63,944 nucleotides of DNA, filler included, from Ministeria vibrans ATCC 50519 (GCA_943704425.1; 5 parts of 5 records of this genome joined end to end with filler, not necessarily neighbours in it), one strand, 5' to 3'; positions 19,452-28,478 are shown, counted from the first letter of the whole stretch. The notes: generated from the sequence alone by a model not told the origin. Translations and numbers: made by a program.

Positions 19452-20281
19452 TGCATCACTGGCACTCACTTGATCATGGACAAAAAAAAACTTACAAACG
19501 CACACGATGAAACTGCCATCAGCGTTAAACCGGCTTGGGCCTGGCGCCTCGGTGCGAGTCACCATCGAACACTGTCCATTGTGAACAGTCGCAACATGAT
19601 CCTGCGCAAACAAAAGGAGACATGGACGAAAAAAAAATGAGAAAACTTATTAATAAAATAATAAATATTTTTGGCGATGACAAGAGATCAAACACAATAA
19701 CAAAAGACAAAGCAGGTGAGAGCACTCAGCCCATACAACACACTGACACACACACACACACACAACAGGCGTGGGAGGGGACACACGGCCAGGGACACGC
19801 AGCATACCTCGCTCTCGGCCACTGCGCCACTGGTGAACTGCTCGCCCGCACTGTCAACGTCAAACCCCGAAAAATTCCCATCGACCACAGATGAGCAAAA
19901 CAAAACCGAGCTCCTCTGGCACGTACCGTTGAGGCTCGCCATGCTGGATGGGGTCGTGTATGCGGCGGACCCAGCGCATGCGCAGTGAAGCGCCATTCTG
20001 CAAGTGGAGTCCGCTGAGTTCAGCTTCGACGCTGTATCGGTCGCCTGTGTGCAGCAGAATCGTTGCCAGGTCCTTCGCGCCATGCGAGCCGATCAACTTC
20101 TGGTACTGCTTCCTCCTACAACACAAAGTAAGCGAGGAGAGGGCGCTCGCTTGCCGTTTGGGCGTGTGTACTTGGCCGCAGGCAACGTTCGTTTTCCTTG
20201 GCCTTTCGTCGTGATTGAGCACTGCGTCATTTCGACGCGACCGTCCGACTCATACAGAATCTTTCCAGAGGTTTGACCCAT
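19452..20281 (-). CDS. 5' part of an unknown multi-exon gene starting MGQTSG (possible N-myristoylation)
   Basis: Phase-consistent GT-AG exons: MGQTSGKILYESDGRVEMTQCSITTKGQGKRTLPAAK|RKQYQKLIGSHGAKDLATILLHTGDRYSVEAELSGLHLQNGASLRMRWVRRIHDPIQHGEPQR|AGEQFTSGAVAESE|DHVATVHNGQCSMVTRTEAPG... No domain recognised. Confidence 0.55.
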
Positions 20282-20703
20282 GACGGCAGAAGAAGAAAAA
20301 TGTATATTGTGAATTGAATTTATTGAAAAGTTACGCAATTCGTCCAAATAAAATTAATCTGCCCGTAGAAGTCGAGTAGTCTTAATTTCAAGGCGATGAT
20401 GGACCACTAAGCTACAACCAAGTATCAAGTATCAACAACCTTGACTGAACCTTGGCTTAGCGACGAGGTGATCAAAGTGATATTTTATGACGACACTATG
20501 ACGAAAAGGTTATCTCAAAGGTTATTCTTCGTCACCACAAAATCACACCTAATCAACGCAACTGGCTTGACACAGAAAAAAAAACACAAACATTTCACGT
20601 CTTTGTTCTTGAGAAACACAACATTATTTCCATTTTTATTAAACAACAACAATAATAATAACAATAATAATAATTATTATTATTATAAACAAAAACGCGT
20701 TAT

Positions 20704-23700
20704 CTATACGAGTGCGCTGCTCGTTGACACATCGAGCTCCTTGCGCAACCGCCCCACAATACCAGGCTCAATCGCATCAAACGCCTCGTCAACCGTATCC
20801 ATCATCGGCAGTCCATCAGCATCAAACTGCGCTCGTGCCCCCAACATGGTCGTAATCTTCCGATACTGCAGAATTAGTGCGTCTCGTCGCTCCACAAACT
20901 GTCGCAAGCGCTCTTTCCGCTGCTCTATCGTCTCATTCACATCAATGTCTCGCTGCATCTTCGACTGGTCATCTCGCACCTTCTCAACTACACAAACAAA
21001 CACAACGTCATGGAAAATCAAGACCCAACTTCGTCTCTTCCTCTTACCCTCTTGCAGAAGATTTGCGCGAATGGTCGCAGCACTTCCCGCCCCAATGTTC
21101 GCAATGCTCTTTTTGCGCTGCATCACATAATCATCGCTGCTCATCGCAACCACAACGTCCACAGGCACCGTCTCCTGCATGACAGACGCAATCGCAGGAT
21201 CGTCTCCACCTCCACCCTGCAGATGGTACTCGTGATCCTTGAACACCCCCTTGCGTCCCCCTTCACCACCAGGAGACTCCTCATCCTCATCATCATCATT
21301 CCCTTCATCCGGCATCATGTTCATCGGGTTTGCAATCATGTTGCCAATCTCCACCGCCTCGTCCACCATTTGACCCTCAATCGCCTCTTCCTGTGCATCC
21401 GCCTCCAGTTCCACCATGTCGCCCATTGTCGTATAGTGCACCTCACTCATCACAGACAACACTGGAGTGTCCTCGTCGTCGGTGTAGCACGATTGAGTCC
21501 CCTCGCCCTCCGAATATTTACGGTTCCCATTCGTATTGGTGCTTGCCGAGTTGTTCGTTGTGTCACCACTGCTCGACGACGGTCCCGCCATACTCTGCGT
21601 TTGCTTTGATGTCTTATTTGGAGCTACAACAGAAAGAACAAAGGAAAAAAAAAACAAGAAGAAATAATAATGAGTATTTATGACCATAGCGGCAAAAAAA
21701 AAAAAAAAAAAAAAAAGAGAACAAGAGGTGGGAAAACGGGAATCTTACTTGACTCTGTGCGTGACGGCTGCGACGTGCGGGACAACCCCGGCAGCGAGTT
21801 CTTGACATAGGTTTTGACCTCCTTGTAAGCCTTGCCACGCAGCGAGAACAGCAGACAAATCAAAAAGCCCTGGGTCGTGTTGAAGATGATGAACAGGTAC
21901 CAGAACACCACGCCTGTGAAAGACACAAAAAAAAATCACACACAAACACACACACACACACACACACACGATGAGCAACCACAAAAATAATAATAAAAAG
22001 GGTAGTTCAAGTACCTCCAACAAGAGCAATGTAGGCAAAGAGCCACGCAAGGCCCATTGACACAAACAATCCGCAGTAGAGCAGAATGTTGCGCCAGTTG
22101 CTACGCGACTCAGTCGACTGAATCTTTTTTCTGCTGTTTCGCAGAGTGTGCATCACCTGTCAAACAATGCGACAACAAATATAATTCATGTCAGTGTTTT
22201 TCAATTGTCCCCCATCCCATTTTCTTACTCGAATCATCACAAAGAGATTGTGCAACAGCACAAGTCCAATAGGCACTAGCACAGCTCCAATAAGCCCAGA
22301 GCGAGACGACAGCCAACAGTGCGAACTCCCACTGCCCAGTCCAACCGGCTCCCAACTGTTCGACACATCCACAATCGTCACAATCAGTGTGATGATGGCA
22401 GGAATGACCCAGCCAGTGAATGCATACACTCGCATCTGAGGCGGACTGGCAGACAGCCGCACAAGCAACACCTGAAAATAAAAAGACGTATTATGTGTAC
22501 GCGCCCCACAAAAAGTGAATCACTTGTCCTCCTTACCCAATACTCGTGCGCAATGTTGGCAGTCCACGCAAACGTCACCATCACAAAGAAGTACAGCACC
22601 ACCGCAACCGCATGACACCCATTGCGGTCCGACACCTGATCAATCCCCGCTAAAAACGTAATGTTCACTGCCAGAATCGCAACACACAAGTTCGCCAGAT
22701 TCGTCTGCGGTCGAGTCCGAATGGCCGCAATCAGCACAAACGACAAAAGAATGTACAAACACCTACACAAAAACAAGAATCAGTTTTCACATTCAAATCT
22801 TCTTTTCTTGTTTTTCTTACGCAATGATACTGAGCGAGCACCCAATGTACGTCAGAATCGTCAGTGCCTTCTGATCGGCCGCAGACAGCGTCGTCAGATC
22901 CACTCCCGCAAGAACTGCAAAGCTCGTCAGATGGTAACACCGACAAGTCGTCTCCGTCGCCGACTGTGAAATCACCTCGCATCCGTCGGATGACCACAAA
23001 AGAGTGTCAAAGTCAAAGTAGACACACTCACGAGGGTGGTCGACCGGCACAAGATGCTTGAAGGTCAGTAGTACAGCCGTCGCATTGGTCAGACCACTCA
23101 CTGTGCGGTTGCTCACTGTCAGTCCCACAATGTTTGAGTCGATCCGTTGCGTCTGATTGTCTAGTACAGGTCCAAACGGATTCACCCCAATGTACTCAAT
23201 GAACTTGGTGTCGAAGCACGAGAGACTGTTCACATCCGCTCCAAAGATCTCAAGTGCAAAGCCCGGCTGTAGCGTCGCCGTCGCCCCATTCGACGCATCG
23301 TATGTCTTCTCAATTTGCGTCGCGTTGCTCGCTTTCTCAATCAAGAACACCAACTGTGTTGCACTCAGCTGACTAAACCGGTCGCACGCCTGCAGTCGCG
23401 TGATTAAATCCGCAAAGTTCTCCATCAGCACCGGCACTTGGTTCACTTTGTTCTGGTCCGACCGCAGCGTCGTTGTCGACGCATTGTCCACCAGGTTGTT
23501 CAGCGCGTCCAGTGTGCTGTTCGTCGTGTTCGTCGACACATCGTCAATGTTATTGTCTGAAAACTTAATCACTCCGTCCAGAGACCCCAAAATAATGTCC
23601 GCCGCAGAAGACACATTCTCGACCGCCAGCCACGAGTTGTCCACCGTCACCTGCTTCAGACGCTCCGCATTGTCCTGCGCTGTCTGCGTGCTGTTCGTCG

Positions 23701-26700
23701 GTGTCTCAGACAGAATCCGCAGAATGCACGCCGCCGACGACAGGGACGGGTTGCCATTGAGGATCGCCCGCCCCGAACTCACAGTCTGCCAGTCCACATA
23801 ACGACCCGCACACAGGCGAATATTGTCCACAATCACTGCGTAGCCCGAGATAGTGTGCAACGATTGCATTCCCCGGATCGTCACCAGATTCGCATTCTCT
23901 TGCAGTGTCACATTGCCCGTCACCGTCTCAAGCAGATGGAATCCACGCAAATGGCGCAGGTTCGCCAGATTCACCAGAGCAATCGAACCATGCAAGGTTG
24001 TCACATTGTTGAAGTGCACATCGTCAAGTTTTGGGCACAACTTAATCGTCAAAGTACCATTCACAACCATGCCAGCGTGCAGCTGCGTTGACAGGAACAG
24101 ATCTTCGACGTCCGTCAACACTGCCAAATCGTTCACTTCAACACTCGACGCTTGCATCAGTGCCCCAAAGCACGTCTTCGCCTGTGTCAATGCACTCAAG
24201 CGCACCAGCTTAATCCCACTTTCGCCGACAGTAGTCACGCTGTCAAAGCCCGAAAGGGTCGCCAGCGCAGTGTTGTTGTCAATGTTCACTCCCACTACAG
24301 TCGTCAGCGCCGGCAGTGAGCATGACAGTGTTGTCATGCTCGCATGTTGGGTGATCGACACCACTCCGCCAACACTCGCAAGCGCAGCCAAAGGAGTGCA
24401 GTCGAGTGTCACAAACCCATTGTTGCTCAATGTCAGTGTGCCCCCAAGCGACGTCAGTGGTTCCATCCCAACCAACGACACCAGATTGGCATTGTTCCTG
24501 ATCGTGAGTGAACCACTCAGCAAAGTGGTCGACTCAAACAGGCGTGCAAAGGAGGTCATTCCATTGTTGTCAAGAGTCACAGACGACGACACAGCACACG
24601 ATGACAAGGCCGACACATTTGTAAGTGCCCCATTGTCCTCCAGCACGACCGAGTTGGCTGCAACAACTCCTTGAAGACCATCCAGCGTGGCCAGATTGTC
24701 ACATCCCGACACAGTCAGTGCACCCGTCACCGTGACTCCCGTCAGACCGGACAATCCCGTCAGCGACGTCAGAAGAGGATTGTTCGTGATTGAGAGTGTG
24801 TCCGTCGTCGACGCTCGACGACGATTGTTCCCACTAAGACCAATGCCACGCAGACCCGACAGTCCGTCCAAATTAAGCAGTTGCCCATTGTTCGAGATGA
24901 TTATCCCTCCCGTAACATTCGTCAGTGACTCCAGACCCGCCAGTGACGCAAGAAGTGTCGTGTTCTCAATGTACAGACTTCCATCAATAAAGGTGATACT
25001 GAAACCAGCCAGCGACGTCACATCCGCATTGATGACCATGTCCCCCGCAACTGTCGAACACCCAACGTATGCGCTGATCCGATTCTTGTGACTGCCGTGC
25101 GTGCCAATCACTCGGCCCCCGCGACAATCACTCTCGCATCGCTTGCCCAGCGTGTTTGGCGGACACGCACACACAAACCCGTCAATGTTGTTCGTGCATT
25201 GCGCACCGAGTGCACACGGAGCCGACGCGCACTCGTCAATGTCCACGTCACACGTGCGCCCCGTGAATCCACTCGCACACACACAGACGAAACGATTGAT
25301 TTCGTCGGTACAAGTCGCACCGTTTGTGCAGGGCGACGAGGCGCACTCGTCAATGTCCGTCTCACAGTTCACTCCCAGTGTGCCCAGTGGACACAAACAC
25401 GCGTACGACTCGATGCCATCGCGACACGTCCCCGTGTTGGCACATGGTGCTGAAACACAATCGTCAATGTTGGTCTCACAGCTATCACCTTCAAACCCGC
25501 GAGCGCAATTACAATTGTACGAGTTGGTTTCATCTTCGCATGTTGCACCGTTCAGACACGGGCGCGAACTGCACTCGTCAAACGGAATCTCCGTCTCGCA
25601 TACCATTCCCGTAAACGCTGTTGTACACGTGCACACAAAAGATCCCAGCCCGTCGATGCAAGTGCCGCCTTGTTGACACGGGTGCGTCGCACAGTCATCA
25701 ATGTTCGTCGCGCAATTGGCATCCGTAAACCCAGACTGACACGTGCACGAGAATTCGTTGACCCCGTCAACACAAGTACCGCCATTCAAACACGGCGTTG
25801 AGGCACACTCGTCGATGTTGACACCGCACAGCGCACCATTGTAGCCGGCAGAGCACAGGCACAAGTATCCGCTGATTGCATCAATACATGTGGCGCCATT
25901 TTGGCACGGACTACTGGCACATTCGTCAATGTCAACGTCGCACTGTGTGCCGGTGTAGCCAGAAGCACAGGAGCAGGCAAAGCCATCGACTGCATCGACG
26001 CAGGTAGCGCCATTTTGGCACGGAAAGGAGGCACACTCGTCAATGTTGATGCTGCACAGTGTGCCAGCGTAACCCACGACGCAATCACACGTGAAGTGAT
26101 TGGTGCCATCGCGGCAAGTCGCGCCATTCTGGCACGGCGAGGAGGCGCACTCACCCTTGTTCTCGCACACGCTATACAAAAACGGATTTTGCCCACCCAG
26201 AGAACCCATCACGCTCGCAATGCTCGTCCGCTTATTATATGCCAAGAGCTTCACGTCGTCATCCTCCATCGTCGCTCCCATTGCACGCGCCACCACCACC
26301 GCACTCGTATTCATCGCATCCACTTCAAGCAGAAACCCATCTCGATTGCCTCCCACATATCCCAGCGACAGTATTCCCGACCCGTACATCGCGCCACCCA
26401 CCAGCAAGGTGTCCCCCAACATAACCAGTGCGTTCACTTGACTCTCCGTCCCATCGTCAAAGACCGCCTCGGCAACTGTTTCCGACGATGTCACATTCAC
26501 AGTCCACACCATAGCTGTCGTCAACGTCGCCGTCGAACCACCAAATCCTGCCTGAGTGTACCCTCCCATGTGCAGAAGTCTGCGTGCGCCATCCATCACA
26601 ACGGAGTAGATTTCAAAGTCGGCCGAAGGCGTGCTGAACGTCGTTGTCAACGACGCACCATTCGTCGCATTCAGTCCGTGCACCACCAGCACAATTTCTG

Positions 26701-28478
26701 TGTCTGCGCCCGTCGCCGCACCAGCATACGTCGTCGAGCCGATCACCCCCGACAAATATACCACGTCACCCGTCGGACCCATTACAATGTCTTTTCCAAA
26801 ATCGTTACTTGCACCTCCATATTGTGCGTACCACACCACGTTGCCATCTGCGGCCGCAAGTCGCGCTACAAAAATGTCCCAGCCTCCCGCATTCGCATTC
26901 CCTGTCGTGTTCCCACTCGTATAGCCAACCACGTACGCGTCTTCTCCCGATCGAGTCAGCGCAATGCCGCGCACAGTGTCATCCTCACTCGTGCCTAAAA
27001 GCACTGTGTACAGCGTCGCACCAGTCTCCGCATTCAGGCACATCAATGCTCCATCGCGTTTGCTCACACTCAACGACGTCTGCCCGTGAAATGTCGTCGC
27101 ACTAGCCGGTTTCTCGAGCAACACAAACACGCGCCCGTGCCTCCCGTCCACCATCATCGTTACTTGGTCGTCGCCTCGGTTACTCTCGCTAATCTGGCGC
27201 GTCCACGAGTACGCTCCACCCGTCGCGTTCGTCAGGCGCCCCACTGCCACATCGTTTGCCGTGTACGTCCCAAACAACGATCCGCTTACGCCATACGCAA
27301 CGTACACAGCACCATCCCAAGCGGAATCGACGACAAGGCCGCCGGGATATACCGAGAAGGCGTGAGTCTCTTCGACAGTCGCCACCACCTCACCGGCCTC
27401 GCTCGCCGTTGAGCTCAGACAAGAACACTGGTACCCATTGACAAAGTCAATACAGGTTGTGTCGCCAGGACATGTGACATCGGAACACTCGTCGATGTTG
27501 GTCTCGCAAAAAATGCCTATGATGCCTGTCGGACATACGCACACAAAGCTCTCCGTCCCATCGTTGCATACACCGCCATTCAGACACGGGCGCGAACTGC
27601 ACTCGTCAAACGGAATCTCCGTCTCGCATACCGTTCCCGTGAACCCTGTTGCACACGTGCACACAAAAGATCCCAGCCCGTCGATGCAAGTGCCGCCTTG
27701 TTGACACGGGTGCGTCGCACACTCGTCAATGTTCGTCGCGCAATTGGCATCCGTAAACCCAGACTGACACGTGCACGAGAATCCGTTGACCCCGTCAACA
27801 CAAGTACCGCCATTCAAACACGGCGTTGAGGCACACTCGTCAATGTTTACACCGCACAGCGTGCCATTGAAGCCAGCAGAGCACAGGCACGAATACCTGT
27901 CAATTGCATCAATACATGTGGCACCATTTTGGCACGGACTAGAGGCACATTCGTCAATGTCAACGTCGCACAGTGTGCCGTTGTAGCCAGAAGCACAGGA
28001 GCAGGCAAAACCATCGACCCCGTCGACACAAATACCGCCATTCAAACACGGCGTTGAGGCACACTCGTCAATGTTGACATCGCACAGCGTGCCATTGAAG
28101 CCGACAGAGCACAGGCACAAATACCCGCTGATTGCATCACTGCATGTGGCGCCATTTTGGCACGGACTAGAGACACATTCGTCAATGTCAACGTCGCACA
28201 GTGTGCCGGTGTAGCCAGAAGCACAGGAGCAGGAAAACCCATCGACTGCATCGACGCAGGTAGCGCCATTTTGGCACGGAAAGGAGGCACACTCGTCAAT
28301 GTTGACACCGCACAGCGTGCCATTGAAGCCGACAGAGCACAGGCACGAATACCCGCTGATTGCATCACTGCATGTGGCGCCATTTTGGCACGGACTAGAG
28401 GCACATTCGTCAATGTCAACGTCGCACAGTGTGCCGTTGTAGCCAGAAGCACAGGAGCAGGCAAAACCATCGACCCCG
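20704..28478 (-). CDS. Adhesion GPCR: Ca-binding EGF array - beta-propeller - 9 EGF - expanded receptor-L/LRR solenoid - GAIN/GPS - secretin-class 7TM - long cytoplasmic tail; 5' end missing
   Basis: DIDECASSPCQNGATC-type repeats. GPS CVYFDFDTLLWSSDGC...TTCRCYHLTSFAVL. TM1 ALTILTYIGCSLSI. Later exons NLANLCVAILAVNITFLAG, CHAVAVVLYFFVMVTFAW, GWVIPAII, CWL and LFIIFNTTQGFLICL. Confidence 0.92.

Follow-up and report, generated by a model that had tools for sequence, protein, structure and literature searches.

We analyzed a window of 63,944 nucleotides, filler included, in which five parts of five genome records of Ministeria vibrans ATCC 50519 (GCA_943704425.1) are joined end to end, although not necessarily as neighbours. 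Our analysis considered the piece 19452..28478 of this window, where the minus strand from 28477 down to 20704 very probably carries a single eukaryotic gene, interrupted by introns and truncated at its 5' end, for a giant adhesion G-protein-coupled receptor (GPCR). In order from the N-terminal side, the encoded protein contains an array of EGF repeats, a beta-propeller of the SBBP type, a second EGF array, a leucine-rich solenoid of the Recep_L type, a GAIN domain with its GPS, and a seven-transmembrane (7TM) bundle, followed by an acidic cytoplasmic tail. All of this up to the first half of the first transmembrane helix lies in one stop-free frame (28477..22820, 1886 codons, 5.66 kb), and as this frame holds five independently recognised domain families, its occurrence is far beyond chance. 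The domains found in this frame are given below, where residue i corresponds to nucleotide 28477-3(i-1), and every element of the receptor lies on the minus strand, which the first-pass annotation had left unstated.

27419..28477, minus: EGF array 1, residues 1-353; calcium-binding type, made up of a partial EGF, eight complete ones and a last one with five cysteines (cysteine spacing, Pfam)
26168..27418, minus: SBBP-type seven-bladed beta-propeller, residues 354-770, 417 amino acids (Pfam, homologues, AlphaFold2 model, Foldseek)
25136..26167, minus: EGF array 2, residues 771-1114; nine full EGFs, mostly calcium-binding (cysteine spacing, Pfam)
23708..25135, minus: short cysteine-containing linker, Recep_L-type leucine-rich solenoid and C-terminal cysteine cap, residues 1115-1590 (Pfam, relatives, AlphaFold2 model)
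22898..23707, minus: GAIN domain with GPS, residues 1591-1860 (Pfam GPS, phmmer against the PDB)
22925..22933, minus: predicted autoproteolysis site HL|T, codons H1849-L1850-T1851 (translation, alignment with the database proteins P0055 and P0056)
22821..22882, minus: first half of transmembrane helix 1 (TM1), closing exon 1; the helix is split by intron 1

The GAIN domain and the helix bundle identify the protein. Pfam recognises the GPS with 51.2 bits (motif CRCYHLTSFAV at residue 1845), and a phmmer search of the PDB with the GAIN region returned adhesion GPCRs only, among them ADGRG2 (8e-15) and ADGRF1, which aligned over query residues 29-300. An exhaustive HMMER search with the same region gave 1337 matches in a representative library. 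When aligned with P0055 and P0056, the HLT triplet, the four GPS cysteines (C, C, C.C) and the tryptophan are invariant, and a peptide resembling a tethered agonist, TSFAVLAG, stands directly after HL|T. The GPS and the first half of TM1 share exon 1, where 14 residues separate the helix from the tethered peptide. For the bundle, evidence was gathered exon by exon and not on the joined spliced protein: seven hydrophobic helices are counted by hydropathy, and the Pfam profile 7tm_2, applied to exons 2 and 3 separately, is covered from position 19 to 180. Among the motifs that mark such bundles, the cysteines joining TM3 and extracellular loop 2 (ECL2), the CW of ECL2, the TM6 tryptophan and the N..QG motif of TM7 are all retained. 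With a GAIN domain and GPS, a 7tm_2 bundle and the GAIN domain placed before TM1, the predicted protein falls into class B2, that of the adhesion GPCRs. No relative was found by an alignment-based metagenome scan with the GAIN region, and none by a DNA-pattern scan for the GPS and tethered peptide, the pattern of which had Leu in place of this gene's Val and fits P0055-like genes only, so that this second negative means little.

The gene model below joins these parts.

28477..22821, minus: exon 1, 1885 whole codons, 5' end cut; both EGF arrays, propeller, solenoid, GAIN/GPS and the start of TM1
22820..22763, minus: intron 1, 58 nucleotides, GT..AG; interrupts the TM1 helix
22762..22537, minus: exon 2, remainder of TM1, TM2 and TM3 (7tm_2 at 2.4e-6, profile 19-96; P0055 residues 219-307; hydropathy)
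22536..22472, minus: intron 2, 65 nucleotides, GT..AG
22471..22229, minus: exon 3, TM4, ECL2 with the CW motif, and TM5 (7tm_2 at 7.2e-9, profile 103-180; alignment with P0055; hydropathy)
22228..22157, minus: intron 3, 72 nucleotides, GT..AG
22156..22015, minus: exon 4, intracellular loop 3 and TM6 (tblastn with P0055, splice sites, hydropathy)
22014..21914, minus: intron 4, 101 nucleotides, GT..AG
21913..21749, minus: exon 5, TM7 with the motif FNTTQGF, then the beginning of the cytoplasmic tail (37% identity to P0055 residues 472-525 by tblastn; splice sites)
21748..21624, minus: intron 5, 125 nucleotides, GT..AG
21623..21048, minus: exon 6, acidic low-complexity cytoplasmic tail (open frame and GT..AG sites)
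21047..20988, minus: intron 6, 60 nucleotides, GT..AG, in frame and without stops
20987..20707, minus: exon 7, end of the acidic tail and charged helical end (open frame and GT..AG sites)
20706..20704, minus: stop codon TAG (read from the sequence)
20635..20640, minus: AATAAA in an A+T-rich 3' region, probable polyadenylation signal

The modelled coding sequence has 7290 nucleotides, exactly 2430 codons, over seven exons, with no stop or frameshift and with canonical splice sites throughout. Since the open frame reaches the edge of the piece, the gene lacks its 5' end here, and 2430 codons should be considered as a lower bound, the gene having at least that many. Because it preserves the frame and contains no stop, intron 6 may also be kept in the transcript and would then add 20 residues to the cytoplasmic tail. 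G+C content is 53-58% across exon 1 and 42-50% downstream of it. The ectodomain has 26 N-x-S/T sequons.

The best match of the exhaustive search, P0055 (43% identity), carries its 7TM region (7tm_2 at 8e-32) in one intronless open reading frame (ORF), and TM1 to TM7 of the M. vibrans gene are collinear with it across the exons at 35-43% identity. P0055 lies on contig L001, a metagenome scaffold of 2810 nucleotides from ENA, where an ORF just upstream of it encodes the last solenoid turns and the cysteine cap at 41.6% identity. P0055 and L001 thus join the solenoid end with its cap, the GAIN domain with HL|T, the 7TM region and an acidic tail in the order found here, at 41-43% identity, and for this reason we assign the 7TM exons to the same gene as the ectodomain. 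They differ from it in their intronless 7TM region, and the contig ends before any EGF or propeller would come. Over positions 1-2810 of L001, GAIN, 7TM and tail lie in one ORF and G+C is 60%; the frame shifts once, between 620 and 679, where a small intron or a mistake in assembly may be the cause.

Among the 150 nearest relatives of the GAIN domain, two (P0120 and P0165) have a homologous solenoid together with a Pfam Recep_L match, six have similar EGFs and none has an SBBP-like region. P0120 (1178 amino acids) and P0165 (a fragment of 705 amino acids), both from Joint Genome Institute metagenomes, combine Recep_L_domain with GPS, and P0120 has 7tm_2 as well. Their solenoids are homologous to the one described here (E 3e-7 and 6e-15), while their identity to it is only 23-29%, and neither EGF nor SBBP gave a match in P0120 or in 5 kb of its upstream sequence. 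The nearest relatives that carry names are animal receptors, with 28-48% identity over the part from GPS to TM1, and one receptor from Capsaspora. Two proteins were considered as being of the same type and were rejected: a Capsaspora GPCR of 4644 amino acids found among the GAIN matches is a Calx-beta (ADGRV-like) receptor, and Cupidon of S. rosetta has a different ectodomain (EGF, ConA, TSP1, HRM). Animal adhesion GPCRs such as ADGRG2, ADGRF1, ADGRD1, ADGRL3 and ADGRG6 share the homologous GAIN/GPS and the class B2 7TM bundle. Some animal members also use EGF-CA arrays (ADGRE, CELSR), leucine-rich repeats (LRRs; ADGRA) or a propeller (the olfactomedin domain of latrophilins), but their LRR and propeller modules come from families other than Recep_L and SBBP.

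Both EGF arrays are strongly recognised by Pfam (EGF 6e-110, hEGF 6e-95, EGF_CA 8e-43). Sites were counted with consensus patterns for calcium binding (D/N-x-D/N-E/Q-C), O-glucose, O-fucose and hydroxylation. Array 1 has 8 calcium-binding, 7 O-glucose and 7 O-fucose sites, and array 2 has 7, 8 and 8, respectively; together, the approximately 19 EGF units have 15 calcium-binding sites, 15 sites of the O-glucose type (C-x-S-x-P/A-C) and 15 of the O-fucose type (C-x4-S/T-C), with the Asp/Asn hydroxylation pattern at 18 sites. At residues 350-353 (27419-27430), the last EGF of array 1, which has five cysteines, runs directly on into the propeller segment without a sixth. While the style of these EGFs makes "Notch-like" a fair description, the resemblance to Notch is confined to them, as Notch LNR repeats, the NOD/heterodimerisation domain and ankyrin repeats gave no Pfam match anywhere in the gene. 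At the DNA level, a tandem unit of 228 nucleotides that encodes two EGFs is present in 3.0 copies at 90% identity (27788-28478); it reaches the edge of the piece and may extend upstream. In addition, the two arrays share 517 nucleotides at 91% identity (27579-28094 and 25551-26066, flanking the propeller), which points to a recent duplication or gene conversion within the gene. Owing to these near-identical repeats, both in tandem and between arrays, the arrays appear to have expanded recently, and the number of EGFs should therefore be taken as provisional.

The segment between the arrays holds a single cysteine and a repeat that reads DIFVARLAAADGN... at residue 534. Pfam matched SBBP (PF06739) in one stretch, and the family assignment is carried by the relatives: a word-based search found 7 long and 16 domain-sized ones (best E 1e-71), PF06739 is present in 23 of the 23, and all that have names are bacterial (Adhaeribacter, Archangium, Myxococcales). 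A BLASTP comparison with P0001 aligned the region several times over, repeat against repeat, while phmmer against the PDB gave nothing useful for it. The AlphaFold2 model, built from homologues, has a predicted local distance difference test score (pLDDT) of 75.7 and a predicted template-modelling score of 0.84, and its 26 strands fall into about seven groups of four. Foldseek placed the propeller of CylK first for this model (E 4.5e-19, TMq 0.79-0.80), ahead of WD40 and YVTN propellers in their hundreds. The model thus confirms residues 354-770 as a predicted closed, seven-bladed SBBP propeller. The C-terminal domain of CylK (7fh6/7roo) likewise has seven four-stranded blades and the same Pfam repeat, but it belongs to a cyanobacterial enzyme and is only 18-20% identical, and no catalytic role is implied for the propeller of the receptor.

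Much of what the first-pass annotation of this locus had proposed is borne out by these data. It had called an adhesion GPCR, and GAIN/GPS and 7tm_2 are found in one gene; it had placed calcium-binding EGF repeats on both sides of a middle region, where cysteine spacing and Pfam give about 9.5 and 9 units; and its suggestion of SBBP-type blades agrees with the occurrence of PF06739 in all relatives and with the superposition on CylK (template-modelling score, hereafter TM-score, 0.79). Its start coordinate, 20704, is the last base of the TAG codon. The danger it had named, that the 7TM exons belong to a separate transcript, was tested through the half helix of TM1 in exon 1 and the order in P0055 and L001, and both place these exons in the receptor gene.

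The solenoid, of about 450 amino acids, is continuous; at least nine L.I..N turns follow one another at intervals of about 24 amino acids, and the whole has at least about 11 turns. Its landmarks are CSTVAGDMVI at residue 1140, IVDNIRLCAG at residue 1549 and a final cap cysteine at 1584, and there are 11 cysteines in 476 amino acids. Pfam assigned it to Recep_L_domain (PF01030) with 51.6 bits, the cut-off being 21.8, in two stretches, the best of which spans positions 3-100 of the 112 in the profile; LRR_EndoS, with 27 bits, is slightly below its cut-off of 27.9. Large proteins with PF01030, usually together with PF23952, make up 29 of the 31 relatives (E 3e-57 to 4e-7, 24-32% identity, a range that excludes the two weakest relatives, one of them an animal GPCR). 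Those named are bacterial (Saprospiraceae, Rhodothermaceae, Polyangiales, Flavobacterium), and the neighbours in the ESM Atlas are bacterial clusters labelled "Receptor L domain-containing", mostly from Myxococcota. The AlphaFold2 model (pLDDT 75.4, and above 85 for model residues 31-300 except about 101-110) is that of a right-handed leucine-rich solenoid, consistent with the Recep_L fold. From the sequence evidence, the solenoid probably belongs to the receptor-L family, in the long-array form that is common among bacterial surface proteins. Such bacterial Recep_L/LRR_EndoS proteins (P0008-P0036; Myxococcota, Bacteroidota, Rhodothermaceae) are its strong relatives (E 1e-57 to 1e-20) and share with it the L.I..N repeat of about 24 amino acids, the class of array length and a similar cysteine-containing cap; they differ in being prokaryotic, in lacking GAIN and 7TM, and in pairing the array with T9SS, CARDB or FN3 domains.

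The relation to receptor kinases should be read with more care. A profile of the solenoid family, searched against all PDB sequences, reached only the ectodomains of ErbB3/4, EGFR, ErbB2, IGF1R and the insulin-receptor-related receptor among the 60 matches listed (E 5e-4 to 0.02), whereas phmmer with the solenoid itself found nothing useful in the PDB. The L domains of EGFR/ErbB and of the insulin/IGF1 receptors are of the same PF01030 family and are the sole solved structures that the sequence profile reached among these matches, although at about 21 bits they match it weakly. In each of those receptors, a furin-like cysteine-rich domain stands between a pair of L domains of about 150-190 amino acids, and the output is a kinase, whereas the solenoid described here is one continuous array, in which Pfam showed no Furin-like domain at E up to 10, and has a GPCR output. 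It is not the L1-furin-L2 unit of receptor kinases. Where the first-pass annotation spoke of a receptor-L domain of receptor tyrosine kinase type, the receptor-L part is upheld by the Pfam score and the PDB profile, while the kinase type is not supported, given the bacterial array kin, the missing Furin-like match and the LRR fold neighbours. The check by model and fold search that it had called for confirmed the propeller and, for the solenoid, returned generic LRR folds and not the L domain specifically.

One can accordingly ask if the solenoid is simply an ordinary LRR domain that bears no particular relation to receptor-L. The protein would then resemble ADGRA or the LGRs, as an adhesion GPCR of the LRR type with additional modules. 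A wide fold search (VIA) gave only classical LRR proteins (RPP1, internalins, Roco, LGR4; Z 17-23), no L-domain structure was among the top 50 fold matches, and Foldseek with the whole solenoid gave weak LRR matches alone (TM-score at most 0.42). The period and motif are LRR-like, and Recep_L itself presumably belongs to the LRR clan of Pfam. As the strong fold matches are to generic LRRs, the fold by itself cannot separate an L domain from an LRR domain. The sequence evidence speaks against an ordinary LRR domain: Recep_L_domain is the best Pfam family and exceeds its cut-off more than twofold, PF01030 is present in every strong homologue, and the profile search found receptor-kinase L-domain ectodomains alone among the matches listed. 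Moreover, L domains are short, and a low Z rank is to be expected for them against a model of 476 amino acids. We thus regard the ordinary LRR reading as unlikely, although it retains about a quarter of our belief and is the most serious of the alternatives considered here.

The other alternatives concern the gene as a whole. The ectodomain might end in exon 1 as a secreted or single-pass protein with EGFs, propeller, solenoid and GAIN, with a separate GPCR gene downstream. The open frame does reach a stop two codons past the proposed splice donor, the exon junction is drawn from genomic DNA, and GAIN domains also occur in non-GPCR proteins, as PMC12716839 reports. However, the hydrophobic stretch that ends exon 1 is half a helix, the remainder of which continues in frame beyond a GT..AG intron of 58 nucleotides; P0055 has GAIN, TM1 and TM2-7 in the same order in a single uninterrupted ORF at 35-43% identity; and exon 2 has neither an upstream ATG nor a signal context of its own, which makes two separate genes highly improbable. 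A chimeric assembly or contamination, in which a eukaryotic EGF/GPCR gene was wrongly fused with SBBP and Recep_L segments from bacteria, could draw on the bacterial or metagenomic origin of the best relatives of both modules and on the near-identical flanking EGF repeats, which could seed such an error. Nonetheless, both modules are in frame with the EGFs within one open frame of 1886 codons, their identity to bacterial proteins is only 25-37% in the tabulated matches, G+C at third codon positions is uniform over all domain segments (0.59-0.67), and the independent contig L001 likewise joins the solenoid end to GAIN-7TM, as P0120 and P0165 join Recep_L to GPS. For these reasons, mis-assembly or recent transfer is unlikely, and we give the chimera hardly any credence. 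The recent internal duplications, the EGF that lacks its sixth cysteine and a search for an orthologue that found none would suit a decaying or non-functional copy from an expanded receptor family. Against this stand the uninterrupted coding sequence, the canonical splice sites and the intact catalytic GPS residues, TM3-ECL2 cysteines, TM6 tryptophan and TM7 QG motif, and we consider such decay very unlikely.

The assignment to a single adhesion GPCR gene has, nonetheless, some weak points that need to be considered. The exons were joined from the genomic sequence, and the N-terminus and signal peptide fall beyond the edge of the piece. Exons 6 and 7, which gave no Pfam family match and no homologue, are attributed to the receptor by reading frame and splice consensus. 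The Pfam score for SBBP from the single sequence is marginal (21.1 bits for a cut-off of 20.5), and confidence in the solenoid model is low over its last third, where pLDDT is 50-70 and falls under 50 in the cap. With 90-94% nucleotide identity between EGF repeats, their number could be an artefact of assembly. Finally, a collection of 15 billion proteins contained neither the protein of this gene nor a relative above 43% identity, which bears on the conservation of the full architecture.

If the gene encodes such an adhesion GPCR, its mode of action can be modelled on other members of the family as summarised in PMC12716839. Two stiff, calcium-binding, Notch-style EGF rods would hold the propeller and the solenoid off the membrane as binding surfaces, the candidate ligand-binding modules being the SBBP propeller between the rods and the Recep_L-type solenoid beside GAIN. 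The conserved motifs suggest that GAIN would cleave itself at HL|T and that the fragments would remain associated. When surfaces, matrix, other cells or prey bind the ectodomain or pull on it, the N-terminal fragment might be shifted or removed and TSFAVLAG exposed, and this peptide would activate the class B2 seven-helix bundle and, through it, G-protein signalling.

Further features of the piece lie outside the receptor's coding sequence. A (CA)16 microsatellite is found at 21937-21969, within intron 4, a run of about 23 T near 21700, within intron 5, and a shorter CA run at about 19745-19765. Downstream of the receptor, at about 19690-20290 on the minus strand, open frames resemble two or three short exons of another gene, of which one begins MGQTSGKILYESDG... 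and another contains ...KLIGSHGAKDLATILLHTGDRYSVEAELSG...; none of the ORFs of 19452-20700 matched a Pfam family at E up to 1. Searches of 19452..28478 for tRNA genes and Rfam features found none.

As to what has been described before, PMC12716839 (eLife 2025) reports GAIN-7TM receptors that carry additional ectodomains from filastereans, choanoflagellates and animals only, which by itself would probably place the host of this gene on the branch formed by these groups. The paper lists EGF, LRR, Furin-like, PQQ (propeller repeat) and RLD (receptor L domain) ectodomains for filasterean adhesion GPCRs, shared with choanoflagellates or animals. The M. vibrans receptor shares with those of filastereans and choanoflagellates the GAIN-7TM module, the conserved HL|T and a long, shuffled ectodomain; it differs in its SBBP repeats (PF06739), which the main text of that paper, as far as accessible, does not name, and in having no HRM. 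Receptor-L with GPCR and propeller repeat with GPCR are, by that account, already catalogued. The order EGFn-SBBP-EGFn-RLD-GAIN-7TM was not found in the literature searched, and searches for SBBP with GPCR, or for Recep_L_domain with GPS/7tm_2, found no relevant paper. The architectural novelty claimed in the first-pass annotation was therefore too broad: the SBBP propeller in a GPCR and the exact domain order appear undescribed, in agreement with the absence of SBBP-like regions among the 150 nearest GAIN relatives, whereas EGF, LRR, PQQ and RLD ectodomains are catalogued and P0120 and P0165 already pair Recep_L with GPS. Recep_L, GPS and 7tm_2 do occur together elsewhere, as P0120 carries all three. 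The architecture is unusual, not unprecedented, for adhesion GPCRs.

On a bolder reading, the two sensor modules other than the EGFs, namely the long Recep_L array and the SBBP propeller, both of a sort characteristic of bacterial surface proteins (Myxococcota/Bacteroidota), were captured from bacteria by domain-level transfer into a holozoan adhesion GPCR lineage. This would be the first GPCR known with an SBBP propeller, and a bacterivorous protist would own a receptor made partly of prey-type adhesins. We hold this to be rather doubtful and offer it as a speculation.

As ectodomain shuffling is a hallmark of the family, and as EGF, RLD and propeller-repeat ectodomains are already catalogued, the gene leaves the current picture unchanged. 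Nonetheless, non-animal adhesion GPCRs are used to reconstruct the origin of cell-contact sensing before multicellularity, and this gene offers a concrete and very large example, in which a fully canonical GAIN-7TM core is combined with Notch-style EGF rods, a solenoid of the receptor-L type and a propeller of a family so far known mostly from prokaryotes. The receptor-L fold would thus be coupled to a GPCR output, besides the EGFR and insulin-receptor kinases, and the gene provides a specific case for asking whether ectodomain modules passed between bacteria and early holozoans.

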